NCBI GenBank assembly: GCA_001179505.1
Contig: CDMY01000392.1
Coordinates: 1 to 64,000 of the forward strand
DNA length: 64,000 bases
Source: Vitrella brassicaformis CCMP3155
Lineage: Eukaryota; Protista; Chromerida
Direction of reading: 5' to 3'
The translations under genes and the position numbers were made by a program. The stretch's first letter is position 1; each line of letters opens with the position of its first letter. The notes beneath the pieces are model-generated. The model saw nothing but the letters and a program-made list of their open reading frames with translations, searched no databases and was not told the origin of the DNA. Below are positions 5,827 through 34,903 of this stretch, piece after piece.

Positions 5827-8800
5827 ATGGCAACGGGACAGCCTCGGATTCGCGTCAGTACCGCTCCCGCGCCGCAACAAGAAGGCGCGTCCCTCCCTGA
5901 GCGGCTCTCTGCGGCGTGGGGGTCGCCTGCCGATGCATCGCTGGCTACAGTGCATCAGCTGGGGCTGGAGATGCCCATGGGAGGGGTGTATGAGGAGACC
6001 AGCGTGAATGGCTTTGTTGTTGGAGATGATCTGGTCAAGCACCTGAGTCAGGACCTGGAGGCGCTCAACCTGGACAGGGTGTCGTCCTATGACCAGCCGA
6101 GCAGGAAGATGGCGCGGTTTCGCTCAAGGGTCAGTTCACGAGAGATCACACACTGTTCACCATCTGTCTTATGTGTGTTTTGCTTTCTTGCTTCAGGACA
6201 ACCCCTTCGCCCACGTGGCTCCCTGGGCGATGCGGCCGTCATTCCCTCCCCCTTCCCTCCCCCCTCCCACACAAGCCGCAGACCGGCCACCCCTCCCCCC
6301 TCCCCCACACACAGACGCCAACGGTCTGCCCAACGGTCCAGACTCACTGCCGCGCGAGTCCGACCACCCCATGATGTCCCCTCCCCCTCTGCTTCGCAAC
6401 GGCGGGCGGGACAGCGACCTTGACAGTGATGGTCTGCGGATGTCGTCGAGCGGTCCGAGCATCGAGGGCGAGGGGGGCATTGCTCGAGGGACGACGGGCG
6501 GCAGTGGGTCGCTGAAGGGGGTGTCGTCTATACCATCGCAGGAACAGCCGCCGCCGGTTGCTGCCGCTGCTGTCGCTGCCGCTGAGCCCGCTCCCCCAGC
6601 AGCAGCAGCAGCAGCACCGCTGTACGGGCAGCTTTATGACATGTACCAGCAGCAGCCGCCACAGGGCTATCTGCCAGCTCACCCGTACGGCCCTCCCGTG
6701 TATGCGCCCCTTCCCCAATATGTCGGCGGCTACGGCGTCGTGCCACAGATGGGCGGCATGGTCTTTCCGCCCCCACCAGTGGCTGACGGCATCGGTGGTG
6801 CTGCTGGTGGTGGTGGTGGTGCTGGAGGTGTTGGTGTTGGTTCAGAGAGTGACGGTAGCGACTCTGAGGAGCGGTTTTATCAGATCGTGTCGGAGCCGGT
6901 CGAGTCGTACCTGAGGATGGACGACATCCCGCCTGACGCGCAGGTGACTGAGTGAGTGGGGATGCCCATAAGGCATGCACTGCACTGACGAAACGGACAC
7001 AGAGGTATTAGTTGCCTCTCTCTCTGTATGTGGACATCACGTGATTAGATCCCTGAGTTTTACGACGGTATATCGTTTTCACTGGGAGAGGCCGGCCGCG
7101 AGCTGCTGAGGTACTATATCAGAGCGTCCGGACATGGTGAGTGAGCACAGAAACGAGACAGACGCGAGATGTGAGGCGGACAGAGCAGAGCCATCGACAA
7201 GAGTTCTCTCTCTCTGTGATGTGATGTGTGTGTGGATTGGTTCATTCAGGCAAGAAGGGCAAGACCCTCCAGAACACCTCCATCCCCGACCTCCTGCGAA
7301 TGGCATACGAAACGTCAGAAGACGAAAAGACAACATCATTTTCAGACACCGAATCGTCTGCGATGTTGTATCTCTCTCTTCATGTGTGCTGGTTCACTCA
7401 GAGGTCTGTGGCGCGTGGCCGTGCGGCTCCACCTCGAGCACAAAGGCGTGGCCCCCATGACTCCGGCACACGCCGAGATGCGGAAATACAAGCAGGACCA
7501 GTCCCGCCGCCGTCGCGAGAAGCACAAGGCGGAGCCCACCGATCCAGTGGAGCTCATGCGCACGCCATCAGGCAGACCGACAGTGGCCTATCGGGACGGA
7601 ATGACGCTGCGGCTGGGCGCGGAGGGGCGGCGGGAGCTGCTGCGGCGGTTCCGGGACCTGTATGAGACGCGCAAGGACTTCTTGACGCGGGTGTTGCAGC
7701 AGAACCAGATCAAGTACTCGGACATGCGCAATGCGACACTGGCAAAGGTACGCACCGCAGGTGGGGCGGGACAGACGGGACAGAAGGGTCAGCGGCAAAT
7801 GGACGCATCGCATCTTCCTCTCCCTCTCCCTCCATCTCGCTCTCTATGCGTCTCACAGATTCTTCGTGTGGCGTACTATGCTGGGCTGTGGGACGATGTG
7901 GTGGCCATCCACTTCGACCACCTCAACAGCAAGTCCGCCAAGGACCGTGCCCGCCGCACCGCACGCGAAGGTGGCAACACCAACAGCCCCACCACCACCG
8001 CAACCACAAACGACCACCCCCTCCCACAGCCACAAGTGGTGGCTGGCAAGCCCCTCGCGCGCACCGACCAGCCGGCCATCCCGCAGCTGGGCGACCCCCA
8101 CCTCCCCCAGCCCCTGCCCCCTCTCGTCCCCATCAAGCAGGAGCCCCACCGCAGACGCAGGCGGCACACCACCAAGGCAGCTGAGCTCGTGTCGCCACGT
8201 GCACCGCTGCCCCTGCCCCTGCCCCCTCCCCTGCAGCAGACGGATGCCTACGGGCAGATGGTGGGTGCGGGAGCGGATGGGGATTACCTCTTTACGGGTG
8301 CGGCTGAGGGCTGGTCTCGGTTTCAGCCGCCGGAAGGGCCGACATTGGACCAGCCGTATGGTGGTGGCGGCGCTGCCAATGGGTGGGGGCACGTGAGTCC
8401 GACGAACGGCTATGCGCCGGTAATCCCTCAGGCAGTCCCTCCCTACGAGTACCCGCCCCTTCCCCCCTACTTGCATCCTACAGCGGGTGGTCCCCTGTGC
8501 ACCTGCCCGGTGCACGGCAACGTCGGTGTGGGTCCATGGCATTATGGATCGCCACAGCTGCAATCACAACAGCCACTCTATCTCCCACCAGCACCACAAG
8601 CAGCAGCAGGGGCAGGGGCACACCAGCCGCCAGACGATGGCCTCCCACCACCACCACCACCAGCCGCAGCAGCACATGATGGGAACGAGGAGAACGGTCT
8701 GCAGAACCCCCCGCCCCTTGTGTCGTTCGAGTCCATCGATCGCATGATCGGCCCGATGCCGTCCAGCCAAGACAACAACGAGGCCAACAACCTCTACGAC

Positions 8801-9070
8801 CCCCTCGGCTCCAACGGCGGCATGACCATGGGCATCGGCGTGGGGCTGGGCATGGGAAGGAGCGAGAGCAGCATGGACAGAGGTGTCTTTGGGTCCGGTT
8901 TCGGCAGCGGTGATGGGTTGTCTCGCGGCGTGAGCATCAAGCGGGAGAGGTCTGCCGGCGGCGGGATGGGGTTAGGGCTGGACATGGGTATGGGCAACGG
9001 CATGGCCATGGGGGATCGGTCTGTTGATGAGGGGGACGGTATCAAGACCGAGCCCTTCGGGAGGCTGTGA
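5827..9070 (+). CDS. Uncharacterised protein with two tandem copies of a helical domain embedded in Pro/Gly/Gln-rich low-complexity sequence
   Basis: Phase-consistent exons. Repeat 1: FYDGISFSLGEAGRELL...LQNTSIPDLLRMAYETGLWRVAVRLHLEH. Repeat 2: YRDGMTLRLGAEGRRELL...MRNATLAKILRVAYYAGLWDDVVAIHFDH. Confidence 0.75.
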
Positions 9071-10599
9071 GCGATATGTGCGAGGAGGGAGGGGAGGGGA
9101 CGGGGAGAGGGAGAGGGAGAAGGGGGGTAGTTTGCTCATTCATTTCACTTGTACAATAGTGTTGGTCGTGTCTGGCGCTCGATAGACGCCAGCCTTTTTC
9201 CCATCAGCCTGCCTGCCTGGGTGTTGGACATATATGTGTGTCTGCATGGAGTGATAGCCAGACTGATAGGAGCAAGCAGAGGAGGTGATTTGAAGCCCGC
9301 AGTGGTCTCAACATCACCTCCGTGTGCTTAGCCGGTGCATGAAGATGCTTTGGTCTCTGCGCATTTGCGTAACTGGAATGAAAGGTTGTCGTAACTGAGC
9401 AAATGAGTTTTGATGCCTGAATGGAAGGAAGTGCCCTTCCTCCTGGTGTGGAGTTGTGAAAGGTCCGAATTCAGTCTGTTGTACACGCGATTGACTCATC
9501 AGCAACTGTCCAATTGTCGCAAGCGAGTCTGATTCACTCGTGTGTTTGTTTAAACACCAGCCATGTACTCATCAGCCACCCATCCCACACCACAGGCAGA
9601 CTCGGACATCCATGCTCATCCGATTCAAACTAGCTATCAACACCATCGCCACCAGTGGGCGGTCTGGTCGGTCGATCAAAAACATACCATCACACACACA
9701 CACACACACACACAAACGCGCAGGCAGGCAGGCAAGTGCCGCGACGATGCACGGCACTTCACACGACATGAGCGCTAGGTAGGTCACTCACAGGCACACG
9801 CAGCAAGCAAGACATGAGCGTTATATTGGGATACGGCACGGAGACAGACACATGGATAGGTTTACACCCTCACCTCTCCTCTCTTCACTGCTGCTGAAAC
9901 GAGGAAGGAACTCGTAGAAAGTTGGTTGACGTGGAAGGAAGGCAGAGTACATCAGACAGACAAGCCAAACTCACAGGGAGGCAATCCGCTTCTCCCCACC
10001 CACACCCCCCACCCCCTCCCACCCTCCCTCCCCTCCCCCCACAAGTCATGTGTGTGTCACGAATACGGTTTCCGTAGTGACGTCACGCAGGCAGCCAGAC
10101 AGGCAGAGGCAGAACCAAGGCTAGAGAGAGACAGACAGACGGACAGCCATCCGTGCATGAGGCAGCAGAAGGCAAAAAATGGCACCACATGCAGCCAGAC
10201 AGACAGGCAGGCAGCCATGACCCACCCACAAAACACTCACTGAGGAGGAGGTTGGAGGGGGGAGCAAGGCACGGCACAGACACACCCATCTGCAGTGTAC
10301 ACAATGGAGAAGATCAAAACTGGGTGCTCGTGTCAGCGAATCGCAATACTCAGGCAGAATGCACTGGCTCGTCCATCAACCATGCAGGCCTCGGTCCTTC
10401 GCCCTCCCTCAGCACACCCTCACAAAACAAATCGAGTGCGACTTGTCACGTGGAGGTACGCAGAGAGTGCATCAAGGAGCCTGGGACCAAGAGCAGATGG
10501 CGAGTAGATGGTCAAGAAACTCACGCACCGACAACACAACCAGTTACACAATACCCATCCAACCTCCACCTCCCACCCACCCTACCAGCCATCTCTCTC

Positions 10600-11997
10600 T
10601 TAAAAGACGGCCACCGAGTGATGGTTGTTGTGCCCGTGGCCGAAAAAGTTGTGCTGCGCGCCACGCCACCCCTCGTCATACTGCCCATACTGGTCGTAGG
10701 ACGGCGGGGCAGGCGCATCATACTGATACCGATCACCGTAGCCCCCCTGATGGCCCCCCCAGTGTCCATACCCCCCGTCATGCTGGTGCTGGAAGCCGCC
10801 GCCCTGGTGGTGGCCGTAGTCGTACCCTCCCTCCATGTGGCGTGGGCCCCTGCCACGGCCTCGCCCCCTCCTCGGCTTGGCGTGCATGCCCCTGCCCTTG
10901 GGCGATGTGATGCTGCCGTGCTGCGGGTGGATGGATGGGCTGTTGGGGTTGGGGGCGATGGGAGAGGCCTTGTAGTAGAGGACGTTGATGGACTTGAGGT
11001 GGGCCTGCATCTCTGGGTCGATCGGTACGTGCACGTCCCAGGTGCGGGCACGCTCCATGTCCAACGGACCGGGAATCTCAATACCTGCAGCAGGAGACGA
11101 ACGAACCAAGACAGAGACACATGCGACCATGTCCCTCCATATCTCTCTCTGTCCGTGTTAATGTGTGTGAGGGTGTGTGTTCTCACCGTCGATTTGTGGC
11201 GTGCTGTGCTCTTGCTCTTGCTCCTGCTGCTGGATCTCGCCGCTCTCCTGAGGCACTTCACAGGCCTCATGCACCGGCTGCTGCACGTCATAGCTGCCGT
11301 CATATCTGCCGTCATAGCCACCCTCATACCCGCCCTCCTGCTGTTGCTGGTACCCATAGCCCTCATGCTCGTCATAGCCGTAGTTGCCGTAGTCGGGCTG
11401 GCCATACTCGTACTGCTGCTGGTGGTGCTGGTACATGGCCATGGGCATGGGCGTCACGGGCGTCATGGGTGGGGCATTCATGTGCTTCTCCTGCGCCTGG
11501 TTGCTGAGGTAGTAGTTCTCGCTGTCGTCGACCTTGATGGGGTTGCCATTCGCAAACCGATCAGTGTCGATGTGCACAAAACCTGACACACCCATCACAT
11601 CACATCACATTCAGTGAGGCACTGCAGGTGTGTCACGTCTGTCACGTCCCCCCCCTCCCCCCTCTGTGTATCGCTGCTGCGCTCACCGTTCTTCCAGTGA
11701 AGGCCGAACATGCGTGTCTCGCGGCGGATGACCTGACGCACCTTCTTCTGCAGCCGGATGGCCTTCAGCAGATGGAACTGCTGCGGCGCCAGCGACGGGA
11801 TCTGAATGCGCGGATCCGCCAGGCCGACGAACGTGGGAGCAAACACGGTGCCCGGCGCGCCTGCAGGACACCAGCCAGAGAAGAGACACCCGATCATCCC
11901 GTGCCATGCATCGTTCCGTGTGTCATGTGATGTCCGCCTCTCTCTCCCTCTCACCCGGTGCATTGGCGAAGCCGTCCTGAGAGCCGGTATGGCTCAT
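10600..11997 (-). CDS. Gly/Tyr/His/Gln-rich low-complexity protein with an RG-rich patch (prion-like, putative RNA-binding), 4 exons
   Basis: MSHTGSQDGFANAP | GAPGTVFAP...GLHWKN | GFVHIDTDRF...QQQYEYGQPDYGNYGY...QID | GIEIPGPL...RRGRGRGRG...GGYGHWGGHQGGYG...AVF*. All junctions are GT-AG and in phase. Confidence 0.75.
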
Positions 11998-14941: not shown

Positions 14942-15768
14942 ACATATACCTGTGTAGAGGGGGGCGGCGGGTCGTTGGTCCCCTCGTGTGTTTGCCTTGC
15001 TGTGGATAGACCGGTTTCTTTGTTTCGGTGTACATGGGAGAATCCTTCAATGCATCCATGTGTCGATTCCACGCGTCCCGTTTCTTAGTTCGGCGACCAA
15101 CACCGCGCAATCAGGCATCACCCCAAGCCAGTCATGCAGGCAGAAGGCAGGCAGGCAGGCGAAATGACCCACACTATGATGATGAAGGCCGACAAATAGC
15201 TACAAAGCGGTTCCTCGCTTGACTGACTGACCCAAACAGCAAACAACCGTTTGGGTTTTTTTGTGGTGAGAAATACCACCCACACGAACACACCGAGACA
15301 GCAGCCAGCCATCGCCGACTGTGTGCACGGCTTGTGCACATCTAATCAGACCAGAGCTGGCACGCCCATTGCAGCACCATGTGTGTCAACACTCACACCA
15401 ACACACACACCAACACACACACACATGAAGAGTAGTGCGAAGAAAAAGGTCATGGGTCGCACAACCACGCCGCAGCAGATGAAATCACCAGAAACTCTCT
15501 CTACGCATAGCCGGCCAATAGCACAGCAAAGAACGTCAGACGGGAAGGGCAAGCTACGCACGTACATATCTGCACATGTCATCCATCATTCAGTGGGCCA
15601 TCTTTCTCTCTCTCCCTCTCTCTGTGTCAGCCGCTCCAACACCTGTTTAACACGCCACACAGTACAGTCAAACCGCAAGCAATGCACTCACTGCACGTCA
15701 ACATTCACCCCAGAACAGCCCACCCATGATCAATCACCGCCCGGTCCAGTCAGAGCGAACGCCGGCAC

Positions 15769-16340
15769 TCAATCGCCGGCACCAGAGCCACTGTTGACCG
15801 GGGCGGCAGCACCGTAAGGCGGGACATATGGTGGCGGCTGTGGGCGTGGCCGGGGTGGCGGCGGGGGCCGCGGCTGCGGCGGTGGCTGTGGTGGCCTGCC
15901 AGTGTACACACGATTGCGGCAGCAGGGGACCACCGGGCCCAGCCATCCGCACAAGTACTGGGGACAGGAGCGCTGCAGCTCACGCCTCTCTCCTCCAGTC
16001 GCATCATCGGCAGCTGCACACAGCCAAGCCAGCCAGCACACACGCAGACACGTAATAAATGCAGTCACTGCGAGAGGACCACTCTGCTTCCCTCGCTCAC
16101 CCTCACCGTCCGTGTCGATGGCCTCCGTCGACAAATTCACAGGCCCGCGGAGCGCCTGAAGAAACACACAGGGGACCCAGTGGGCGATGAGTCAGGCCTT
16201 CAGTCGACTGGCCCTTTTCTCCTCCCTACCATCGCATTAGTGGCGGCAGCAGCTGGCGCCATGGCCGCATTGGTGCACATGGCGCACACAACAGCAGCAA
16301 CAAGCAGGAGGGCGCCAGTCAGAGGCAGCAGGACCTTCAT
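15769..16340 (-). CDS. Secreted Cys-rich pre-pro-peptide, copy A (Cys module plus Pro-rich tail)
   Basis: Signal peptide MKVLLPLTGALLLVAAVVCA; exon ALRGPVNLSTEAIDTDGE; ERRELQ then RSCPQYLCGWLGPVVPCC, followed by Pro-rich sequence. Splice phases are consistent. Confidence 0.7.
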
Positions 16341-17501
16341 TGACAGACCTCGTCTCGCTTTGGCTGGGGAGAGAGAGAGGGAGCAAAGGGGCTGGTGCCG
16401 GAACAGATCTGACGCGCAGAGGTAAGATCTCGACCTCTACTCCGTCTTCGCGGTGCGTTCGGGATGGCCTCTCTCTCTCTGCGGCCACAAACTCACGTTC
16501 GTGTGAGGCCATGAGGCCCTCCGTGTGTTGCCTGGTGCTCCTGGGATGTCATTCCGCTCTTTTGGCCGCAGACGATCTCCTTTTTCTGAGCTCGCCTTTT
16601 TCGAAGGCGTGGATTTCTCGAATGGAGATCTCCGCTACACGCGGCAGATGATCAGTGTGGACGTCGACATTGTGCATGCCGTAGACGGCCTGACCCCTTG
16701 ATCCATTCTTTCATTCGACCAGTATGCGAGCGTCTGTCTTTACATGTCTGTCTGTCTGTCCAGTCTGTTTGTCTGGTGGGACCGTCTGCATTGTGCTGAG
16801 CAGGGCAGTATGGATGGATGGATGGATAATGGGAGGCACGCATCAGCAATTTACGTGGATGGATGTACTTCACGCAGTGACTCCCGTCGGTCTCTTATTC
16901 CGTCCCATACCCCACTCGTCATGGAATGGAATATGGACAGACGGCACACACAGACATACACAGTCACTTGCCATCAACACAGACAACGAAGCACTCAGGT
17001 CAAGTCAGGTCAGGGTTCGGTGGACGACTCACCCAACACGAATCCCTAACGGACACGGACGACTGCCGAGCCACACACACACGCACACACAAGACGGGTT
17101 GATGTGTAACGATGCGCCCGTGGCCACGGCACGTACAAACATGAACAGTCGATCGCGATGTAATGATAACGAGCTACGGACACTCAAATGGACAAACGAT
17201 GCTCACGAGCAGCACACGTGAATGCAATGGACAGACATGCAGACAGACATGCAGACAGACAGACAGACAGCCAACCAGACAGACAGACATCCAGGCCAAT
17301 CAACACACACTATCCCCACACGCCTACCCACAGGGGAGGCACCCTCAGAAAATGAGAGGCTCCCCGGGCACGCGTGTATCTCTCTGTAGACTTAATGAAA
17401 GAATAATGACGCACACGCCGCAGGCAGACGAGTGCAGGCAGTAGGTGCACCACAGCCAGCGGGTCGAAAAATCACGCATTCTCTATGTCTGGCTGTCTCG
17501 T

Positions 17502-18345
17502 CTACCTGCTGCACCCCCCACTCAGAGCACAGCACCTATCATCCCACTCGCTCTTCAAGGGGGGGCAAGGTAGCGCGCCGTTGGGTAGCCCAGAGCACAT
17601 ACAGTCAGGCATCGTGTTCATCTGTTCGAAGCACTTCTTCGCGCAGGCGAGAGGCTTCAAAAAGTCGGGGATTCCGACTGCCATGCAGCCTCCGGCCTGA
17701 CGGACCGCGTCACAGGTCTTCGCGCACGCCTGAACCCACACTTCCTGGATCTTCCTGTCGCAGCAAGGACTACTTGGCCCGCAGCCGGTGGGAGGGGGTG
17801 GGGGGGGATTGGGCGCGGGGGGAGTGCCCCCACCACGGCAGCAGGGAATCACTCCGCCCAGCCATCCGCACAAGTACTGGGGACAGTAGCGCTGCAGCAC
17901 ACGCCTCTTTCCTCCAATGGCATCGTCGGCAGCTGCAGGTAGGAACACACACACACACGGAGACAAAGAGTGAATGGACTCCCGGAGAGAGTCAGCTCCG
18001 CTGCTTCTTTCTGAGGAACGCTCACCATTGGAGTTGGTGTCGATGACGTCCGTCGAGGCATTGACGGGAAGAGGCACCTGAATACACACACACACCGACA
18101 GACACACACACAGACAGACAGACAGACACAGACAGACACAGACAGACACAACAAAGAGGGAAGGAAGCCGTCTGAGCGACACCTCAATCACTTTTGTGCG
18201 TGGGCGTTTTGCCTACCGTCGTCGCATTGAAGGCGCCGTCACTAGCTAGTCCGTCCAAATCGGTCGAAGCGGCGCGGAGGGCGGGGCCGGCCATCACAGC
18301 AGCAGCCAGCAGAAGGGCGCTAACAAGGCACAGCAGAGTCTTCAT
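17502..18345 (-). CDS. Secreted Cys-rich pre-pro-peptide, copy B
   Basis: MKTLLCLVSALLLAAVMAGPALRA | VPLPVNASTDVIDTNSN | AADDAIGGKRRVLQ RYCPQYLCGWLGGVIPCC, Pro linker, CGPSSPCCDRK...CAKTC...C...CAKKC...CMC...PC...CCALSGGCSR*. Confidence 0.8.
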
Positions 18346-19282
18346 GGTCGCGAGGTCACAGATGGAAACGAGGCCTCAAGTGGTCGAAATAGACTTCGTC
18401 GTTCGGTGACAAGACAAGATGCAAGAGGCCGTCGGTGGAGCAGATGCCGACAGATCTGAGTAGCCCGGGAGGGCGAAGGCCGCTTGTGTGGGTGAAGACA
18501 GCGACAGAGAAGACAGAGAAGAGAGTGCTCTGAGCTCTCTCCATTCTCTCACACCTGTAGCTCAGCTCGCACCTGTCGGAGGCTGAGCTCCTCGAAGAAG
18601 GACGAGAGATCCACATCGCCTGCGACGAACAAACGAACGAATGAGATTGTTTGCAAGCTCTGATCGGGTTTCCCGAAACCCTGTAGCCTAACTCATCCTG
18701 TCCAGCCCGACAATTTCTTGCTACTTGGAGTGTGTCGGCGGACATTGCAGTGTCACCGCACAGTGCGTAAGAGACAGTTATGTCAGGGCGACCAACAGGA
18801 GGGTGAGTTCGTGTCCGTGTCCATCTCATCTCACACGTACCGATCGCTGGCGGGATTCTTTTGATGTGAGGCTCACAAGTCGGTCGTATGCAGTAGATTT
18901 ATTCGTCAGAGTTGTCAGGCAATGCATGACCAATGCATGAGCAATCTTAACTGTGGATATTAGTCGATTGCCCTCTGCTGCACATGTGGTTCTCACTCGA
19001 TGATTCGTTCACTCGTCCAACATGATTCGTTCACTCAGGTCTGATCGGTCGCTTATATCTGTCTCACGTCCCACCGTTTCCTCCTCCCTCCCCCAGAACT
19101 GCCTGCCCTCTCCCGCCCTGCCGTCACTTCACATCAACAAAACACATGTACTTCACCAAAAGACATATACAAAGGATGTATACAAGAGAACAACAGGGAG
19201 GAAGCAAGGAGGCAGGCAAAATGACGATGTACACAAATCGGCTAATCATGTCACGAACACTGAGAAATCACAATAGATTGCC

Positions 19283-20030
19283 TCACCCACTGAAGCAGTC
19301 CCGCCTGCATGGTGCACAGGCAGGCAGACATACGAACGACGGGGTGTTTGTGGCAAGTAAGGAAAACGCAACACAGACACAGACACACACACACACACCC
19401 AGCACAGCACTCGAACGTACAAGTGACTCGCCGACTGTGTGCACCGGCTGTACACACCAGACCAGACCAGACAACGGACTGCGGGAGAGAGTGACTCCCG
19501 GAGAGAGTCAGCTCCGTTGCTTCTTTTCGAAGGGACGCTCACCATTGGAATCGGTGTCGATGGCGTCCGTCGAGGCATTGACAGGGATAGGCACCTGAAC
19601 ACACACACACACACACACACACACGCGGGCGCACAGACAGAGAGAGATTCCCACAGAGACACTTATACAAATGTCCGTATGTGTATATGAATATACGTAG
19701 TATATGTATGTATATATGTATATATATATCTACTTACGTACATACACTTACACACATACACAGTACGTACGTATACATATGTATGTGTGCATTTGTATAC
19801 ACAGACGGACGGACGGACGGACAGACAGACACACAGCAGTCTGAGCGACTGTCACACCTCAATCACATTCGTGGGTGGGATGGATGGATCACCGTTTCTG
19901 CAGCGAATGCGTTGAGACGATTTGAGGCGTTGCTGGCATCGGTCATGGCGCGAAGGGAGGGGCCGGCACTCACAGCAGCTGCAGCCGCTGCTGGTACGGG
20001 CGGGGCGGGGTGGGCCGTCTGTTGGGGATG
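19283..20030 (-). CDS. Pre-pro-peptide family copy C; 5' end unresolved; predicts the short peptide VTCTFECCAGRDCFSG
   Basis: Four phase-consistent exons: ...AAVSAGPSLRA...AET | VPIPVNASTDAIDTDSN | AGAHSRRVTCTFECCAG | RDCFSG*. I found no intact ATG plus signal peptide upstream. Confidence 0.5.
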
Positions 20031-20674
20031 GCCTGCAGACACACAGACAGATGCAGTGCACACACTTTGTGAGTACGCGGACTTATGTTGATCTGGTGCT
20101 GTGTGGTGCCGGCAGAGAAGAAATACGAGTCGGGCAACGACCAAGTACTCACTCACGCCTGCACACACAAGACACACAGACGTGCAGACAGATGCCTGTG
20201 AGCTCTGGATGTAGAGCTGCTGCCACTCACACAACCAAGACAGCCGTTTGGCCGAGGGCTTACATGCATGGACCTTGCCGATTGTCGACGCGACGCAGGA
20301 CAGTATGATGGATGGATGGATGGATAATGGGAGGCACGCATCAGCAATTTACGTGGATGGATGGTAGTGGCAACAGGTCACGTGCACATCCGACATCACT
20401 TGCCATCATCAAAGAACATTCAGATCAGAGCGCATCAACACAGACAACGAAGCACTCTGGTCAGGTCTGTGGACGAGCGACTCACCCAACACGAATCCCT
20501 AACAGACATGGACGACTGCCGAGCCACACACACACGCACACAACACGTGTATCTCTCTGTAGACTTAATGAAAGAATAATGACGCACACGCCACAGGCAG
20601 ACGAGTGCATGCAGTAGGTGCACCACAGCCAGCGGGTCAGAAAATCACGGATTCTCTACGTCTGGCTGTCTCGT

Positions 20675-21324
20675 CTACCTGCTGCACCCCCCACTCAGAG
20701 CACAGCACCTATCATCCCACTCGCTCTTCAAGGGGGGGCAAGGTAGCGCGCCGTTGGGTAGCCCCGAGCACATACAGTCCGGCATCGTGTTCATCTGTTC
20801 GAAGCACTTCTTCGCGCAGGCGAGAGGCCTCAAAAAGTCGGGGACCTGTGCGAGTGCCATGCAGCCTCCGGCCTGACGGACCGCGTCACAGGTCTTCGCG
20901 CACGCCTGGACCCACACTTCTTGGATCTTCCTGTCGCAGCAAGGACTACTTGGCCCGCAGCCGGTGGGAGTGGTCGGGGGGGGATTGGGCGCGGGCGGAG
21001 TGCAAATGTTGGAGGGGACGCAGTTCAACCAGCAGCTGTCGTCCCTAGGACCGCAGGTGTTGCAGCAGCGTTGCAGGCGTCGAAGGGATCCACGAACACC
21101 TGCATGGTGAAGCGGGCACACACAGTGACAACACGTCACGACGGGGGGAACTGTGCTGTTTCCTTACCGTCTTGTGTGGTGTTTTCGGCGGCGTTGTGGG
21201 TTTCGGTGGCGTTCTGGTGGTCGGCGGCGGTAGGCAAATCGCTTGTAGCGGCGCGGAGGGCGGGGCAAGCGATCACACCACCAGCCAGCAGAAGGGCGCT
21301 AACAAGGCACAGCAGCATCTTCAT
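20675..21324 (-). CDS. Secreted Cys-rich pre-pro-peptide, copy D
   Basis: MKMLLCLVSALLLAGGVIACPALRA...TTQD | GVRGSLRRLQ RCCNTCGPRDDSCWLNCVPSNIC, Pro linker, then a C-terminal Cys domain nearly identical to that of copy B. Confidence 0.8.
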
Positions 21325-22255
21325 TGTCACGAGATAAGAGATGGACACGAGGCCTCAAGTGGTCGAAATAGACTTCGTCGTTCGCTGACAAGACAAGATG
21401 GAAGAGGCCGTTGCTCCAGCAGATGCCGACAGATCTGAGTAGCCCGGGAGGGCGAAGGCCGCTTGTGTGGGTGAAGACAGAGACAGAGAAGACAGAGAAG
21501 AGGGTGCTCTGAGCTCTCTCCATTCTCTCACACCTGTAGCTCAGCTCGCACCTGTCGGAGGCTGAGCTCCTCGAAGAAGGACGAGAGATCCACATCGCCT
21601 GCGACGAACAAACGAACGAAGGAGATGCAAGCTTTGATCGAGTTTCACGAAACCCTGTAGCCTAACTCATCCTGTCCAAGCCGGACAATTTCTTGCTACT
21701 TGGAGTGTGTCGGCGGACATTGCAGTGTCACCGCACAGTGCATAAGCGACAGTTATGTCAGGGCGACCAACAGGAGGGTGAGTTCGTGTCCGTGTCCGTC
21801 TCATCTCACACGTACCGATCGCTGGCGGGATTCTTTTGATGTGAGGCTCACAACTCGGTCGTATGCAGTAGATGAATTCGTCAGAGTTGTCAGGCAATGC
21901 ATGAGCAATGCATGAGCAATCTTCACTGTGGATATTAGTCGATTGCCCTCTGCTGCACATGTGGTTCTCACTCGATGATTCGTTCACTCGTCCAACATGA
22001 ATCGTTCACTCAGGTCTGATCGGTCGCTTATATCTGTCTCACGTCCCACCGTTTCCTCCTCCCTCCCCCAGAACTGCCTGCCCTCTCCCGCCCTGCCGTC
22101 ACTTCACATCAACAGAACACATGTACTTCACCAAAAGACATATACAAAGGATGTATTCAAGAGAACAAGGCAGCAAGCAAGGAGGCAGGCAAAATGACGA
22201 TGTACACAAATCGGCTAATCATGTCACGAACACTGAGAAATCACAATAGATTGCC

Positions 22256-22420
22256 TCACTCACTGAAGCGGCACCGCCTGCGTGGTGCACAGGCAGACAT
22301 ACGAACGACGGGGTGTTTGTGGTGAGTAAGGAAAACACAGACAAGGGGCTCTCCAACACAGCACTCGAACGTACAAGTGACCAGGCGCCCAGCGATCGTC
22401 GACTGTGCACCGACTGTACA
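22256..22420 (-). pseudogene. Remnant of the last two exons of copy C (VTCTFECC...)
   Basis: Nucleotide match to 19283-19450 (gtcacttgtacgttcgagtgctgtg). The splice donor is altered and the upstream exons are absent. Confidence 0.45.
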
Positions 22421-22632
22421 CACCAGACGTATCGAAGCGACATCGTATGAACAAATCAACACAGGCACACACACGAATGGCGTTGTAGGGGCAGACAGCC
22501 ACTCAGTAGCACAGTACAGCAGCTGTCAGCGGGGCTGGTTTCTCACGACATCAGTCAGTAGGGCATTCAGCCGCTCCTTTTTTTGGACGCAGCTTCGATC
22601 GAACCAGACAAACAAGCCTACAGCCAGCAAAA

Positions 22633-22665
<33 letters not shown>

Positions 22666-22734
22666 CAATGCACTGCACGCCGCTCACTCCTGCCCACCCC
22701 GCCAACCTACCTCGCGGGGACGCCCATGCCCTGC

Positions 22735-23569
22735 TCAGTAGCGCTGGGATGGGTGCTGCCCTTGCCCGCCAGGTGGTGGCTGCCGTTGCCCGCCAGGCCC
22801 TTGCCCGCCAGGCCCTCGCCCGCCAGGCCCTTGCTCGCCAGGCCCTCGCTCGCCAGGCCCTCGCTCGCCAGGCCCTGGCTCGCCAGGCCCTCGCCCGCCA
22901 GGCCCTTGCTCGCCAGGCCCTGGCTCGCCAGGCCCTCGCTCGCCAGGCCCTGGCTCGCCAGGCCCTTGCTCGCCAGGGGACAGCTGGGGGGCGAGTTGAC
23001 TGGAGCCACTGATGGTGAAGCGGACAGTGCAACAGCACTCCGCACCACCTGGTCCATTGCACCACGTGCAGTCAGCACCATCCGCCACAGCGCACGGGTC
23101 CCGAAAGTCTATTGCAGGGTGGGGCAAGATGAAGAATTGGCAACAGCAATCCGCACGATGGCACACCCAGCAGTTTTGGAGCCCCCCCGCAACCATCGTG
23201 GCACACGTGTCGCTCAGCTCGCGCCTTTCTGCTCCAGTCTCGTCACCAACACCTGTGTGTAGGCAGCACATACGCGAGAATCAGTAGTGCGCTTCGCTCG
23301 CTGTCTCTGTCTGATAGCCGCTCACCATCGGGGTCCATGTTGATAAGAGGCACCTGAAAGAACACATCACACGCAAAGGGAAGACAAGCAGCCGGCTGAC
23401 CGAGTCGGTCGGTCAATGTCTGGTGGATGGCTGTTGTGCCTACCGTCGCATTGAAGGCGCCGTCACGAGCTAGTCCGTCCAAATCGGTCGAAGCGGCGCG
23501 GAGGGCGGGGCCAGCGGTCACAGCACCAGCCAGCAGAAGGGCGCCAACAAGGCACAGCAGAGTCTTCAT
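22735..23569 (-). CDS. Secreted pre-pro-protein, copy E: two C-x-C-x2-C-x-CCC modules plus a GPGE(Q/R/P) repeat tail
   Basis: MKTLLCLVGALLLAGAVTAGPALRA | VPLINMDPD | GVGDETGAERRELS DTCATMVAGGLQNCWVCHRADCCC...DPCAVADGADCTWCNGPGGAECCC...(GPGEx/GPGGx)n. Confidence 0.75.
22786..22976. repeat. 15-bp minisatellite, about 13 units (consensus ggccctYgcYcgcca), coding for GPGEx in copy E
   Basis: Tandem units are directly visible; no spacers. Confidence 0.95.
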
Positions 23570-25345: not shown

Positions 25346-25742
25346 CAAGATGACTGGCACTGATACACAGAGAGAGAGCTGGACAGAGAAAGAGCCCCAG
25401 CAAACACACAGGCATACAGTGCCATACACGCCCCGATTCTTCTCTTTCTTCCTCTCTGTCTGTCTGTGCTGCTGGAGCGTAGCGGTGAGTAGCGCCGTCG
25501 ACAGTCCACGCACCAGACAGCTGCTGTGGTCTCACGACACGACAGCTGTCAGGTGCGTCGTCTGTTGATGACGGTAACCACCACCACACACGCAACGCAC
25601 ACTACACAGACCGCAGATCTGACACACACAAACTCACACAGACGCACTCATTTGGCAAAAATCGGGCAGGCAATACAGCACGGGAGACACTTACACCCAC
25701 GCCCCCAACCCCAACTCCCCCCTCCCTCCCTCCCTCCCTGAG

Positions 25743-27891
25743 TCAGTGGATGGACTGCTGCCGGTGGTTGTGCATGACCATGTGTGGGTGGTGGGGCTGG
25801 GCGTCCTGCACCTGCATGCCGTCCATCGCAGCACCACCACCAGCCGCAGCAGCCGCAGCAGCAGCACCGGAGCCATCCTTCGCGGGACCGATCATCCCCA
25901 TCACCTGCGCACACACCACACACGGGGACTTCCACATCATGTGTGTGATGTGGTGGTCCGCTCACCTCGTCAGCAGCCGCCGCCTCGAGCTCTTGTGTGC
26001 CTTGGGGGTAGGGGCTGCTGGCGCGGCGGGCGATGCTTCTCTCATGCTGCTCATGGTCGGCAGGGTAACCAAACCCAATCGCCTGTTGCTGCTGTGGCTG
26101 CGGCTCCTGCTGTGGCTGCTGCAGGTAGCCCCCCGAGTCATCCGAACCCATGTGAAAAGGCGGCTGCGGCAGCTGCAGTGGCTGCCCGTCCACCCCACCA
26201 CCACCACCACCGCCCCTCTCCCCCAGCATGTTGGTCTCAGCCATCGACGCGGCCAGCAACGAGGCAGGAGTGCGGGCGCCGCTCGGGAGGCCGTGCTGCT
26301 GCCCATTCTCAGCCGGGAACCCCACGGTGATGGCGCTCTCGGGCGCGAGAGCAGGTGACCCTGGTGGCTGCCCGTAGGCCAGCCCGTTGGGCTGAGGCGT
26401 GTGAGAGGGGCTCCTGTGGTGTCCTGGGATCCGCAGCACCACTGGCTCTGGGGTGGGGGGGCGGTGTGGGTGTGGGTGGGGGCTCCATCCGCCCGCTTGG
26501 CTGTGGCTGGTGGGGGAGGCGCTGCCCGCACTGGCTGATCTTGCCAGGGCTGCTGGTGGGCCAGGGGGGAGCAGCTGGTTGCTGATGGCACGGTCGGGTG
26601 AGGGCGACTCGACGTAGGAGCCGGGGTAGGTGGGGGTGTTGGCGAGGGTGTGGAACTGGGAGAGTGAGGCCTGCAGGTGGGTGGCGCAGTAGTCCTCGGC
26701 CTTCTTGAACTCTATCACCTGTGTCTCTGCCAAACGGAACACACACAGAGGGGCTCTCTGGGTGTAGGGGTGTCAGTCGGGTGTGTGCGTGCGTGTGTGT
26801 TGGGTGTGTGCCCTCGTACCACAAGTGGCGATGTACCACTCGAAGAGGTTCTTGGGTATGCGGAGCTTCAGCTGGATGTGCTCGGGCTGCTTCATCGGCA
26901 CTGAGGGCGGGGCGACACACACATCCACAGCAGACAAACAGACAGACACCAACATAGGCAGCCTGTCTGTCTGTGTGGTGCTCCCTCGCTCGTTACGGTG
27001 ATATGCTCACTGACGTACCGTGGGTCTTGAGGAAGGCGAACCCCTGTCGCTTGAGGTTGCCGAAGTCGGGGTCCTCGGCAGGGTTGTTATCCGCCTCTCT
27101 GTGCACCACACAGACACACACACACACACACGCACACACGATGGAGATGTGGGTGTGTCGGTGTGTGGGTGGTGTGTGGTGTGGTGTGCTGACCTGAGAG
27201 TGAACCTCTTGGCGACCATGAGAGTGCCCTCGCCGAACTCGATGAGGAACTCAAAGTCGAGCTTGAACAGCTCCTGCAGATGACGGGCACCCGCCGCGTT
27301 GAAACGCAACTTCAAGTAGGTGTAGCTCTGGGACACACACACACACAGACACACAGACACAGAGAGAGAGAGGTTTGTTTGCAAGTAGGTGAGCGGTAGG
27401 ATGCATGGATGGATGGCTGGCTGAGATGGCTTACGTAGCTGTTGTTTCTATTGGCGACAAAGGCGTTAGGGTGGAAGACCTCGATCTTGAACCACGGCTC
27501 AGTGTTGTTGCTGCCGTCGTAGCCGAACTGGTGCGCTGTGTCTGTGCAGTGCAGTGCAGCCACACACATCAACAGAACAGTCAGTCGCCTGTGCCCCGCC
27601 CGCGTTGCCTTTGCTGCCCACTCACTCTCGATGAAGCCATACAGCTCCGGCGTCTCCTCCTCCTGCTTGATCTCGATGCCGCCCGTCCTGACATCCACAC
27701 ACACACACACACACACACAAGATGGCTGACATTTGCCGACACGCCCTCTCAACCCTGCCCCCTCCCTCCCCCTCCGTCGCAGCTCACCTGAACTGCCTGA
27801 GCTCAGCGCACGCGGCGTTGTGCGCTCTGAGGAAGAGGTTCTCGCACGCCGAACCCAACAGACCCTCCATCATAGGCACACTGACTGCAGC

Positions 27892-31853: not shown

Positions 31854-33213
31854 TCAAAAGGCGGGGTGGAATATTGACGACTGCATCTGCATCTCCTGCA
31901 CTCGCACACACACATCATGTGGCTGCAAAGTTACTGTGCCCAGTGTGGCTGCATATCTCTCTATTTATATTGCATACCCGTCGCTGCCTGGCCGACATGG
32001 GTTTGCCTGCGAACCCCGACGCAGTCCCGGGATAGCACTGCATCCCAGCAGGCGGGCGGCTGCGATTCAACACCCACGACGGCACTGTGGGAACACACAC
32101 GCACCATCCCCCGCCCCCCCAGACAAACACACATACTCACACAGAAGTTAGGTTTTGTCTTTGTGGTGTGTCTGGTACCGTCGTGTCTCGGCTGTGGCCT
32201 TGTTGTGACATCCACTCTCTTCTGGTCGTAGTCGCCATGGATCATCATGTGTTTGTTGTGGAACTCGCTCCGCGCGTCGCGCCAGTCGTAGGTGCCCATG
32301 TTGATCATGCGCTTGTCGGGGGCTGCCAGGCGCTCGCCTGATGGGACACCACGGGGCGACTCCTGCTCACCCAGACCTGATGAGACACACACACGAATGG
32401 GGTTTGGGGGTGTGTGTGTGTGTGTGGGGGGNNNNNNNNNNNNNNNNNNNNNNNNNNNNNNNNNNNNNNNNNNNNNNNNNNNNNNNNNNNNNNNNNNNNN
32501 NNNNNNNNNNNNNNNNNNNNNNNNNNNNNNNNNNNNNNNNNNNNNNNNNNNNNNNNNNNNNNNNNNNNNNNNNNNNNNNNNNNNNNNNNNNNNNNNNNNN
32601 NNNNNNNNNNNNNNNNNNNNNNNNNNNNNNNNNNNNNNNNNNNNNNNNNNNNNNNNNNNNNNNNNNNNNNNNNNNNNNNNNNNNNNNNNNNNNNNNNNNN
32701 NNNNNNNNNNNNNNNNNNNNNNNNNNNNNNNGGGGATGAGTGACCTTGGTCGCCATAGAGGCGGGCGGATCGGGCGTATTTCTCTGTGTTGGTGTTGGTG
32801 AAGTTGAACAGATTGGTCTGTGTGGAGTTGTTACAGGGGGCAGTGACGCCTCTTGTGCGTGTGTGTACGCGCGTGTACGTGTCTGAGCTCTCTGGCGTCT
32901 GCCGATCCGTGTTGCATGACGGTCTTCATGGTGTGGAAGCTCTTGTGCCGCTCCAGCTCACGGCCCGTCTTGGGCGGGCTCTGGTAACCCAACAAATCTG
33001 ACAGACACCACACCACACCACAGACAGAGAGACAGCACATTCCTGGACCGACCCACGGCAGGCAGGCATGTCGTCCGGGTGTGGTGTGCTGACTGGAATA
33101 GTTCTTCTCGGTGCGGCCCCGGTACTCGTTGTACTCCTGCAGCTCTTTCTCCTCCTTCTCGTGCTCCTTCCGCTGCGCAACGTGCTGCACGGGACATCAG
33201 ACAAAACCTGGTC

Positions 33214-33250
<37 letters not shown>

Positions 33251-34903
33251 TCCCCTCCCTCTCTCCCTCTCTCATCTCATCGTTCGACCCAGACTGTCGG
33301 CCGACCTTTGAGGTGAATGCGGGATGCGCAGGGCAGTGGAGGCTGCCGTGCTCGGACTCAAGCATGCCCAGCTTCTTCCGCTCCCGCGCGCTCATGCCGC
33401 TCAAGCCTAGCTGCGGCACCGACGCGCAGATGGCCATCCGCCGCTTGGGCTTCAAATCCTCTGCAGGGGCAGCAGCTAGAGGGGCTGCCGGGGGAGGTGC
33501 CTCCTCACCTCTACAAAGAGACATAGACACATGCCCCTCTGTCAACAGTGGAACATATTGTGAGTACCCTGGTTGCTGGTCTTGCTGCTGCTGCTGCTGC
33601 TGCAGCGGGGAGGCTTCTGTGGGCGGCGGGGTGGGGGGCACTGGGGCCGGCGGTGGAGGGGGTTTGCCGTAGTTGCCCAGGCGCGTGTGGTCCATCCGCA
33701 GCTGATCCGTCACGAAGCACAACGGGCGCTGGACCTGCACACACGCAAAAACGGAGCGCAAATTGAAGACAAGCGACAAAGGACACATAAGGTGTCGGTG
33801 TGGGGTGGTTGCTCGCCTCCTCTTTGCGGTATTCGCTGAGGCCGTGGAGTCGCGCGCGGCCGAAGAGCTCCGACGAAAGCTCATAGGTCTTGCGCTGAGC
33901 AGCCGTTGCGGCCCGCTGCTGCTGGGGAGTCTTCCTGGAGCCAACCATACACAAAGAGACACAAAGAGAGACATGGACACAGCTCCCTTCCTTGTGGTTG
34001 CGTACGGTCGGAGCCGCTCGAGTCTGTCGTCGGCCCAGTGTGTCTTGACGCCCGAGCGCCAGAACTCCTGAGGGATGGAAGAGTCCCTCTTGCTGAACTG
34101 CACCTTCTCCGCCAGCTCGTCACCCTCCTTGCCGTCATACACGACGTCGTGACCCTTGCTGTGCGTCTGCACACAGACAGACAGACAGACAGACAGGCAG
34201 ACAGACAGACAGAAGAATCAGGCAAAAAAAAGGCTCCCTCCTAGGCTGTCTTACGGCTCTTGTGTCGGGCGGTGGCGGGATGGCCTGCTTGGCCGGGACG
34301 AACCGGGTGTTCTTGCCGCATTTTGGGTAGTACTGCTGCATGAGATTCTTCTGCGTCTGGACGTTGTAGACCTTGCTGGGCATGGGGCCGTCCTCCTTCA
34401 TGAAGTTGTAGGTGGTCGTCATGTACACCACCTTCCGCTCGCGGTGCGTCAAGGGACTGATTGCAATGCATTGCAACGCCATGAACGCAACAGGGGAGAG
34501 AAAGAGCAGCCCAGAGATCGGTGGCTGACCGGTCTTTGTCGCGTTGGGATTCGGGGGATGGGGGGCGATGCTCCTCCACTGACTTCCTGCACACGTCATG
34601 CAAACAGGAGAGAGATCGATGCACTCACTGCACTGCATGTGACTGTCTGTCCCGTCCGTCGTCTCACTCACTTTGCCTGGATGAGACGCGGCGAGTCCAC
34701 CTTCCTGCTGCGCACCTGATGCACCGATGCACCACGGACATAAACACACATGTGCACCCATCTCGCCGTCACTGCCTGGCCCTCTTTGCGATGATCCCCC
34801 GGGCCCGTAGTAGTACTTCGCTGTAGGTGGGATGGTGCCATAGGAGGTCCCCCTTGCGCAGAGGCAGAGAGGTCAGCCCCAGAGTGCTCCTCGAGTGATT
34901 CAT
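31854..34903 (-). CDS. Uncharacterised multi-exon protein spanning the assembly gap; possibly ciliary
   Basis: Spliced coding exons such as MNHSRSTLGLTSLPLRKGTSYGTIPP, VVYMTTTYNFMKEDGP, GVKTHWADDRLERLRPY, NMGTYDWRDARSEFHNKH and ...EMQMQSSIFHPAF*. No family recognised; could be more than one gene. Confidence 0.55.
32432..32731. other. Assembly gap (300 N)
   Basis: Run of N flanked by (GT)n and G-rich sequence. Confidence 1.

Follow-up and report, generated by a model that had tools for sequence, protein, structure and literature searches.

In diatom wall proteins, after the signal peptide come about 30 residues which end in RRL (or RRIL/RRNL) and are proteolytically removed (PMC5525289, PMC4557024). 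The precursors of this RXL type, such as silaffins, cingulins, frustulins and Silicanin-1, carry a signal peptide for the endoplasmic reticulum (ER) and a spacer ending in RR(x)L; an unknown endoprotease removes the spacer, and the mature protein, which is often Cys-rich or of low complexity, joins the wall (PMC5525289, PMC4557024). A similar layout is found in a tandem gene cluster of Vitrella brassicaformis CCMP3155, which is the subject of this work. The cluster occupies positions 15769-23569 of a 64,000-nucleotide stretch of contig CDMY01000392.1 (C392), the whole stretch being called the window in the following, and its five units are named A to E.

Other systems share parts of this layout. 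In the substrates of plasmepsin V and ASP5, known as PEXEL/TEXEL (Plasmodium/Toxoplasma export element) proteins, an RxL or RRL motif is also located downstream of the signal peptide, and the chromerids, to which Vitrella belongs, are sister to Apicomplexa and the closest photosynthetic relatives of the apicomplexan parasites. Conotoxin superfamilies (PF02950) are multigene families in which a highly conserved signal precedes a pro-region, then a basic site and finally a C-terminal part rich in Cys; the mature peptide typically has about 10-40 residues with a fixed Cys framework, and the signal is far more conserved than the mature part, in which the ratio of non-synonymous to synonymous substitution rates (dN/dS) exceeds 1. 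Defensins and plant Cys-rich peptides have precursors of less than 100 residues and a CS-alpha-beta or knottin-type fold. In the hydroxyproline-rich wall glycoproteins of algae and plants (extensins and pherophorins), as in the cluster, globular Cys domains are joined by Pro-rich rods, and the expansion is by tandem duplication and domain shuffling. Transfection has been reported for Chromera (PMC12407925). To our knowledge almost nothing is known about the wall or secreted proteins of chromerids, and in the literature on Vitrella wall, secreted or Cys-rich proteins we found nothing on this family.

The proteins of the cluster form a family specific to Vitrella; they are secreted and modular, and rich in disulfides and proline. 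We read them, with a probability of about 0.45, as precursors of secreted wall or matrix glycoproteins with an RXL-type pro-domain as in the diatom wall proteins, the function being predicted from this analogy. The analogy concerns the mechanism only. There is no sequence homology to the diatom proteins, the Vitrella cluster has no Lys/Ser-rich regions of the silaffin type, Vitrella is an alveolate and not a stramenopile, and cleavage in Vitrella is predicted. Vitrella is not known to have a silica wall. What the two layouts share is the position of the motif, which in Vitrella is found 36-47 residues after the signal peptide, directly before the part which we call the payload. Judged from the sequences, the combination of secretion, disulfide-rich domains, Pro-rich rods, probable glycosylation, restriction to one lineage and purifying selection is most likely the profile of wall or matrix proteins and not of diffusible peptides. 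A preliminary description of the locus had proposed a tandem family of secreted proteins, not recognised as described in chromerids, with a conserved leader, spacer and basic motif before a Cys-containing part. This outline is retained here, and the family is lineage-specific and functionally undescribed. Its comparison with conotoxins and defensins is not, as shown below.

Gene structures and transcription of the cluster

Gene models were obtained by reading the DNA in three frames and looking for GT-AG boundaries. Table 1 lists the resulting features. The preliminary description counted five same-strand genes; five minus-strand units are indeed present at the positions it gave, but only A, B, D and E are intact genes and C is a truncated remnant. 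All modelled introns are of the GT-AG type and the spliced frames are open. The intron phase is equal among the copies (phase 0 after exon 1 and phase 1 ahead of the payload exon), the donors fall into two types by position (GTAGG[CG] at exon 1 and GTGAG[CG] at exon 2), and 9 of the 9 modelled acceptors end in CAG. For genes B, D and E, uncharacterised public proteins already exist. Our model of B is identical to CEM09063.1 (P0001), and that of D equals CEM09065.1 except for the choice of the first Met, CEM09065.1 beginning at the second. No counterpart of A was found among the public proteins of 112-355 residues. Gene A has a divergent leader, the acidic exon, the motif RRELQ, a module with 4 Cys (CPQYLCGWLG..PCC) and a long tail rich in Pro, while D is composed of the leader, a spacer, SLRRLQR, a 7-Cys N-module, a Pro-linker and a 12-Cys C-domain.

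Table 1. Features of the Vitrella cluster and of the B/D duplication (positions in the window; nt, nucleotides; UTR, untranslated region)
Feature	Span	Strand	Exons or extent	Residues	Remark
Gene A	15769..16340	minus	16340-16230, 16155-16107 (proximal donor), 16013-15769 including stop	134	
Gene B	17502..18345	minus	18345-18217, 18077-18026, 17932-17502	203	
Copy C	19543..19964	minus	exon-1-like piece 19893-19964 (GPSLRA...), exon 2 19543-19594		remnant
Gene D	20675..21324	minus	21324-21168, 21099-20675	193	
Gene E	22735..23569	minus	23569-23444, 23353-23326, exon 3 from 23252		two 3' models
B duplication unit	17370..19462	minus			pairs with D unit 20543-22428 at 92-97% nt identity; internal 17828-18255 replaced
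D duplication unit	20543..22428	minus	3' UTR, coding sequence, 5' UTR and ~1.1 kb of upstream DNA		partner of B unit

Copy C is a gene remnant. Its exon-1-like piece has no ATG, no hydrophobic core and no signal peptide, and its exon 2 is well preserved. The payload exon is missing, because the homology to the block upstream of B and D starts about 80 nucleotides downstream of exon 2. The SRRV previously taken for the processing site of C is intergenic; it is located in the block that is duplicated upstream of D, and a near-identical sequence is present between E and D.

Transcription was evaluated with contigs from four sequencing runs (X1, X2, X3 and X5) placed on positions 15700-21400, by which A to D are covered. 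In the intergenic DNA at 18756-19137 the depth is zero in X1 and X2 and 17-45 in X3 and X5. Contigs of X1 and X2 join 21097 to 21166 and skip 68 nucleotides with CT..AC ends (cut +2), and the skipped sequence is the modelled intron of D (21100-21167), where X3 and X5 are colinear. Since X1 and X2 are empty over intergenic DNA and have the D intron removed, they behave as RNA, and X3 and X5 behave as DNA. The D intron is confirmed by spliced contigs in these two presumed RNA runs and by two complementary DNA (cDNA) contigs of JGI, L034 and L035, which encode spliced D with a 5' UTR of about 290-300 nucleotides. The first of them (L034, JGI 3300017297, 1572 nucleotides) matches the 5' UTR and coding sequence of D at 99.6-99.8% and then continues with the 3' UTR of B at 17369-16805. 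This joint is most likely an assembler switch inside a 96%-identical stretch, and it is a caution against trusting transcript assemblies for these paralogs. The same contig indicates that the long 3' UTR of B is transcribed, down to 16805.

Genes A and B are transcribed as well. RNA contigs specific to B are placed on 17390-17516 with zero differences in both X1 and X2, and an X2 contig on 18215-18273, the end of B exon 1, has 92 further letters which lie off this place, as expected for exons 2 and 3. For A, contigs of X1 cover 15700-15967 (with 751 nucleotides beyond the stretch) and 16229-16570 (exon 1 and 230 nucleotides of 5' UTR). Their 124-125 off-lying letters equal exon 2 (49 nucleotides, with the proximal donor at 16107 and not the alternative one at 16101) plus exon 3 up to a unitig break at 15938; from this arithmetic, with no joint listed, we infer the splicing of A. 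Over exon 2 of copy C (19520-19710) the RNA depth is 0 in X1 and X2, compared with 9 and 5.5 in the DNA-like runs. The preliminary description had allowed for splice models that fail against RNA and for a locus with no transcripts at all; instead, within the covered positions 15700-21400, the D intron is confirmed, A, B and D are transcribed, and C is silent at its exon 2.

For gene E there are two models. In the unspliced model, exon 3 runs to 22735 and is open for 171 codons, which encode two C-x2-C...CCC modules and thirteen GPG[EG][QPR] units. The public model (CEM09066.1, 234 residues) could be reproduced only by removing 23109-23166 (58 nucleotides, GTGTGC..CAATAG) and 22618-22710 (93 nucleotides, GTAGGT..CTGTAG). 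The 58-nucleotide intron shifts the frame, in which a tandem array of 12 copies of a 15-nucleotide unit is then read as (GLASx)n with four Cys after the motif, and a Pfam GLTT-repeat match (E 4e-11) appears in place of (GPGEx)n. Against the public model, the donor of its intron 3 and the TAG acceptor are unlike those of all nine other introns of the cluster; for it, both the donor of intron 4 and its length of 93 nucleotides are typical of the family. The GC content at third codon positions and the codon-usage scores, trained on ten long open reading frames of the window, do not separate the models. On the codon-usage scale the confirmed coding sequence of B is about 0 and the GPGEx frame is equal to it; the GLASx frame is higher, but it is one repeated 15-nucleotide unit. 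A transcript-derived protein of either form was absent from the collections searched, and an AlphaFold2 prediction of the putative Cys modules, made with no alignment, was uninformative with a predicted local distance difference test (pLDDT) score of 49. As the splice evidence is conflicting, only the leader, spacer and motif of E are taken as secure, and its payload depends on the choice of model. Therefore, Cys-rich payloads, which had been attributed to the copies in general, are found in A, B and D and are conditional in E, where CEM09066.1 uses the other frame.

Payload modules, block exchange and selection

The residues following the motif number 68 in A, 130 in B, 132 in D and 159 in E (unspliced model). 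They are built from an N-module with 4 or 7 Cys, a linker or tail rich in Pro and, in B and D, a 92-residue C-domain with 12 Cys. B and D contain 19-22 Cys, and the payloads in the window are almost devoid of His. The linker of B and D is PPAPNPPPPPP, and the Pro-rich tail of A has about 40 residues including Tyr. No Ser-Pro(3-5) repeats were found in them; the Pro runs are PPAPNPPPPPPT in B and RPPQPPPQPRPPPPPRPRPQPPPY in A, with no SPPPP unit.

Paralogs were searched for in the 72.7-Mb, 1064-contig assembly, and the C-domain was found on C713 (P0003, 186 residues), C253, C227 (P0008), C55 and C275. Across five aligned paralogs 14 columns are invariant, namely 11 of the 12 Cys, two Gly and one Pro. 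P0003 (CEM31112.1), which is also present in an MMETSP transcriptome, consists of leader, spacer, 7-Cys module, a linker rich in Pro, Asp and Thr, and 12-Cys domain; it is 33% identical to D, with the two-module architecture and all Cys kept. The family is restricted to Vitrella. A profile search of 1.84 billion representatives returned Vitrella proteins only, together with one spurious bacterial repeat protein, and when B and its payload were used as queries in word-indexed searches of 5.8 billion proteins, the only matches were B, D and E. A search for contigs encoding B found no record.

The AlphaFold2 model of the C-domain, computed from a five-row alignment, has a pLDDT of 81 and a predicted template modelling score of 0.73, and shows one long and two shorter helices together with a small hairpin. 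No relative of this domain was detected: Pfam returned no match at E<=10 for the payloads of A, B, D and E and nothing significant for the full-length proteins, the C-domain profile had 0 matches at E<=10 among the PDB sequences, and the fold searches reached at best E 5.2 (Foldseek, PDB), Z 4.1 (VIA-align, wide) and a template modelling score of <=0.43 (ESM Atlas). A feature search of the ESM Atlas with D gave no usable match, the Atlas's own model of D being poor (pLDDT 0.43). An nsLTP/prolamin-like 8-Cys helical fold, considered for the CC and CxC spacing, was dropped as there was no fold match. P0008 is labelled 'VWFC domain-containing' in UniRef; this label has no Pfam support, and the predicted fold is helical.

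Genes B and D are the product of a recent duplication of about 3 kb. They are 94.8% identical over the 3' flank, 96.3% over the linker and C-domain, and 95.7% over 1.1 kb upstream; in a self-comparison, the intergenic block 18256-19462 corresponds to 21235-22428 at 92%. When the family is compared with itself, the differences occur as blocks and not as scattered substitutions. This is most apparent in B, where 17828-18255 is foreign sequence. Exon 1 of B is 91% identical to that of E at the nucleotide level (4 of 42 residues differ), compared with 88.9% to D, and its exon 2, intron 2 and first payload module are 84-90% identical to C; the identity to A is 72% overall and 89% in the coding module. 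B is a patchwork with a D-like 5' flank, an E-like exon 1, an A/C-like stretch from exon 2 to the N-module, and a D-like linker, C-domain and 3' UTR. These block affinities make B a mosaic to which at least three donors have contributed. Contrary to what had been supposed, not every payload is sharply different between copies: B and D share the linker, C-domain and 3' flank at 95-96% nucleotide identity, and A and B the first module at 89%.

The dN/dS values were calculated with Nei-Gojobori counts, which are small (6-10 changes per class). The ratio is 0.27 for the linker and C-domain of B/D (6 synonymous and 6 non-synonymous changes, with every Cys kept), 0.49 for the N-module of A/B (6 synonymous and 10 non-synonymous changes), and 1.2-2.2 for pairs of exon 1, which encodes the signal and pro-region (6-10 changes). 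The leader exon of B/D is 88.9% identical, compared with 95.7% for the flanking non-coding DNA. As far as such small counts can tell, the shared modules are under purifying selection. The comparison of pro and mature regions, which the preliminary description had put forward for a conotoxin-like family, thus gives the reverse of the conotoxin pattern. It had also considered that the mature regions might be fragments of a known structural domain under purifying selection; the selection is seen, and no known domain was matched in Pfam, PDB or the fold searches.

We propose that the cluster has grown by segmental duplication, as in B/D with about 4-5% divergence, and that it diversifies by ectopic recombination or gene conversion, which would swap blocks between copies (B) and leave wrecks (C). 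The cluster is a clean and recent case of diversification by block exchange between tandem paralogs.

The leader and the RR(x)L motif

A degenerate 51-nucleotide leader pattern has four matches in the window, with 0 expected. They are exactly A, B, D and E, and C has none, in agreement with the shared signal peptide first described. A scan of metagenome contigs with this pattern had no match, L034 and L035, which contain the pattern, being outside its reach. The signal peptide was assessed heuristically from the n-region, the Kyte-Doolittle hydropathy and the (-3,-1) sites. The n-region is MK, the 12-residue h-region has a mean hydropathy of 2.7-3.0, and (-3,-1) sites are present at residue 19; signal cleavage is likely after about this residue, for example between VMA and GP in B. 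The GPALRA motif, formerly ascribed to four copies, is exact in B and E and is altered to GPSLRA in C and CPALRA in D, and the ALRG of A that had been taken as its counterpart belongs to exon 2, and the resemblance is probably a coincidence.

A, B and C have the acidic exon, E has a shortened one and D none, just as the preliminary description states. The spacer has 36-47 residues, a net charge of -3 to -6 and 1-2 N-x-S/T sequons at conserved places. It is followed by the motif, in the contexts GGERRELQRSC (A), GGKRRVLQRYC (B), GSLRRLQRCC (D) and GAERRELSDTC (E), so that apart from C the processing-like sites RRELQ, RRVLQ, RRLQ and RRELS were correctly recognised. The first R of the motif is at residues 59-70, the core is RREL in A and E, RRVL in B and RRL in D and in a dispersed paralog on C347, and the first Cys comes 2-3 residues past R-R-(x)-L-[QS]. 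When A, B and E are aligned as DNA, the likeness extends from the acceptor over the motif as far as the first Cys codon, and past this codon they are unrelated. Thus the boundary between the conserved and the variable part is inside exon 3, three residues past the motif.

The leader is not confined to the cluster. The genome search with an exon 1 profile, which had been suggested at the outset, found 27 places, and at least 19 distinct loci on at least 12 contigs begin with the same 17 codons (L039-L058, on C286, C799, C796, C543, C400, C347, C844, C791 and C395 among others). Between leader subfamilies, a nucleotide similarity of 80-94% begins at the ATG and stops 50-60 nucleotides later. A second subfamily with this leader carries [SP]LRKL[SQ]; its genes on C844, C791 and C543 have the leader, this motif and acidic exons, and then exons rich in His/Asp or Cys/His. 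In the C347 paralog (L049, minus strand), an exon with ..DETGAETRRLSTAC.. is located about 230 nucleotides downstream of the leader, to be compared with ..GDETGAERRELSDTC.. in E, and a different Cys-rich sequence follows. By this sequence comparison, conservation of the pro-region's end, of the motif and of the first Cys extends beyond the cluster. With the leader at at least 19 loci and varied payloads behind it, the array of the window is thus one subfamily of a larger set.

Possible functions and the surroundings of the cluster

In the wall or matrix reading, the proteins would enter the secretory pathway through the near-invariant ER signal peptide, the acidic spacer would be clipped at RR(x)L in the manner of RXL pro-domain removal in diatoms, and the disulfide-bonded, probably glycosylated products would be built into the thick laminated wall of the cell or sporangium or into the extracellular matrix. 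Of the three options named in the preliminary description (effector, antimicrobial or cell-wall family), the last fits best. Several points weigh against it. Wall localisation, cleavage and glycosylation are predictions, and the dN/dS values are derived from few changes (6-10 per class). In P0003 and P0008 the dibasic motif (SLRRLQR in D) is replaced by SLRGE(QL) and SFRGS, respectively, and therefore either cleavage there is not universal or the motif has another role. The canonical Ser-Pro(3-5) repeats of extensins are absent, as is homology to the pherophorin domain, and hydroxylation and glycosylation would be putative. The C-domain has no fold relative to hint at a function, the payload of E hangs on the choice between two splice models, and other leader-sharing genes bear His/Asp- or Cys/His-rich payloads that point to metal handling.

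The last point leads to an explanation as secreted metal- or redox-handling proteins, which would be functionally grouped with the genes on C844, C791 and C543 by the common 17-codon leader, and with which the high Cys content of B and D is also consistent. However, the payloads in the window are nearly free of His, the Cys spacing is fixed in a confidently predicted and partly helical domain, as is typical of the disulfides of secreted proteins, and the Pro-rich linkers suggest structural spacers; we regard this explanation as unlikely. The idea of toxin-, defensin- or antimicrobial-like peptides, cut free at the dibasic pair and driven to diversify by positive selection, draws on the order of signal, acidic pro-region, RR and Cys-rich part, on the tandem array of a lineage-specific family, and on a sub-threshold Pfam Conotoxin match of P0003 over its signal, pro- and Cys region (14.3 bits, cut-off 25.1). 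Full-length B and D do not match PF02950, and no similarity to any toxin or defensin was found in Pfam, PDB or the fold searches. The products after the motif have 68-159 residues with Pro-rich linkers instead of 10-50, and they are modular; their differences come from block swaps and not from accelerated substitution, and where they can be compared they are under purifying selection (0.27 and 0.49), with a B/D leader exon no more conserved than its flanks. The mainly helical C-domain model, with no close fold match, is also not of the defensin or knottin type. The analogy with conotoxins and defensins, in the sense of short, hypervariable, diversifying mature peptides, is thus not supported, and we consider this function quite improbable. 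Proteins for surface adhesion or recognition at the zoospore or sporangium, with modules reshuffled for contact with other cells or a substrate such as the coral surface, would fit a lineage-specific set of modular, secreted, Cys-rich proteins with recent module exchange. Yet A, B and D have no membrane anchor (neither a C-terminal hydrophobic tail nor a signal like that for glycosylphosphatidylinositol) and no adhesive domain known to Pfam, which makes such a role very unlikely.

A different question is whether RR(x)L is a sorting or maturation signal for an ER/Golgi aspartyl protease of the PEXEL/TEXEL type that targets a specific secretory organelle. RRLQR in D fits the TEXEL consensus RRLxx and RELSD in E the PEXEL consensus RxLxE/Q/D; furthermore, the C347 paralog has RRLST, and RKLQE in the second subfamily fits RxLxE. 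The cleaving enzyme would be an aspartyl protease of clade D (PMV/ASP5), and aspartyl proteases of Vitrella are placed in phylogenies of apicomplexan plasmepsins (PMC8540915). On the other side, RELQR in A and RVLQR in B match RxL only and fully fit neither consensus, the motif comes 40-50 residues after the signal peptide, and Vitrella, as a free-living or coral-associated organism, lacks a host cell for export. We therefore hold such a signal to be improbable. Somewhat less doubtful, though still a speculation on our part, is the broader proposal that the leader and R-[RK]-(x)-L-[QS] could mark a dedicated Vitrella route of secretory processing or sorting for dozens of unrelated genes, which might be homologous to PEXEL/TEXEL or convergent with the diatom RXL. 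If it were homologous, it would be a free-living precursor of parasite protein export, and if the route is a dedicated one, the cluster holds natural substrates for testing it. The motif could in this way reveal if maturation of the RXL or PEXEL type is older than parasitism. Should the proteins be ordinary wall components, the locus would be chiefly of annotational value. In addition, the cluster offers expressed and tractable members of an orphan secreted family and a new 12-Cys domain with no detectable relative.

Elsewhere in the window there are ten open reading frames of 320-614 codons (e.g. 1112-2230, 7226-9070, 10153-11586, 25648-26742 and 32958-34172). They have no Pfam match at E<=0.001, and therefore the neighbourhood offers no functional context. 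Within the region used for the transcription analysis, the contig depth rises to about 2500 in all four runs at 16655-17420 and 20284-20665, with many false joints. These spots are GGATGG, GACA and CA microsatellites flanking the genes, which are common genome-wide and are also present in the introns and flanks of the family. The segment 19283-19450 belongs to the intergenic block of which a second copy is located upstream of D. It adjoins a (CA)n run that is translated as strings of Cys and Val, and X1 and X2 cover it at an RNA depth of about 0-6 and about 0.2-0.4, respectively.

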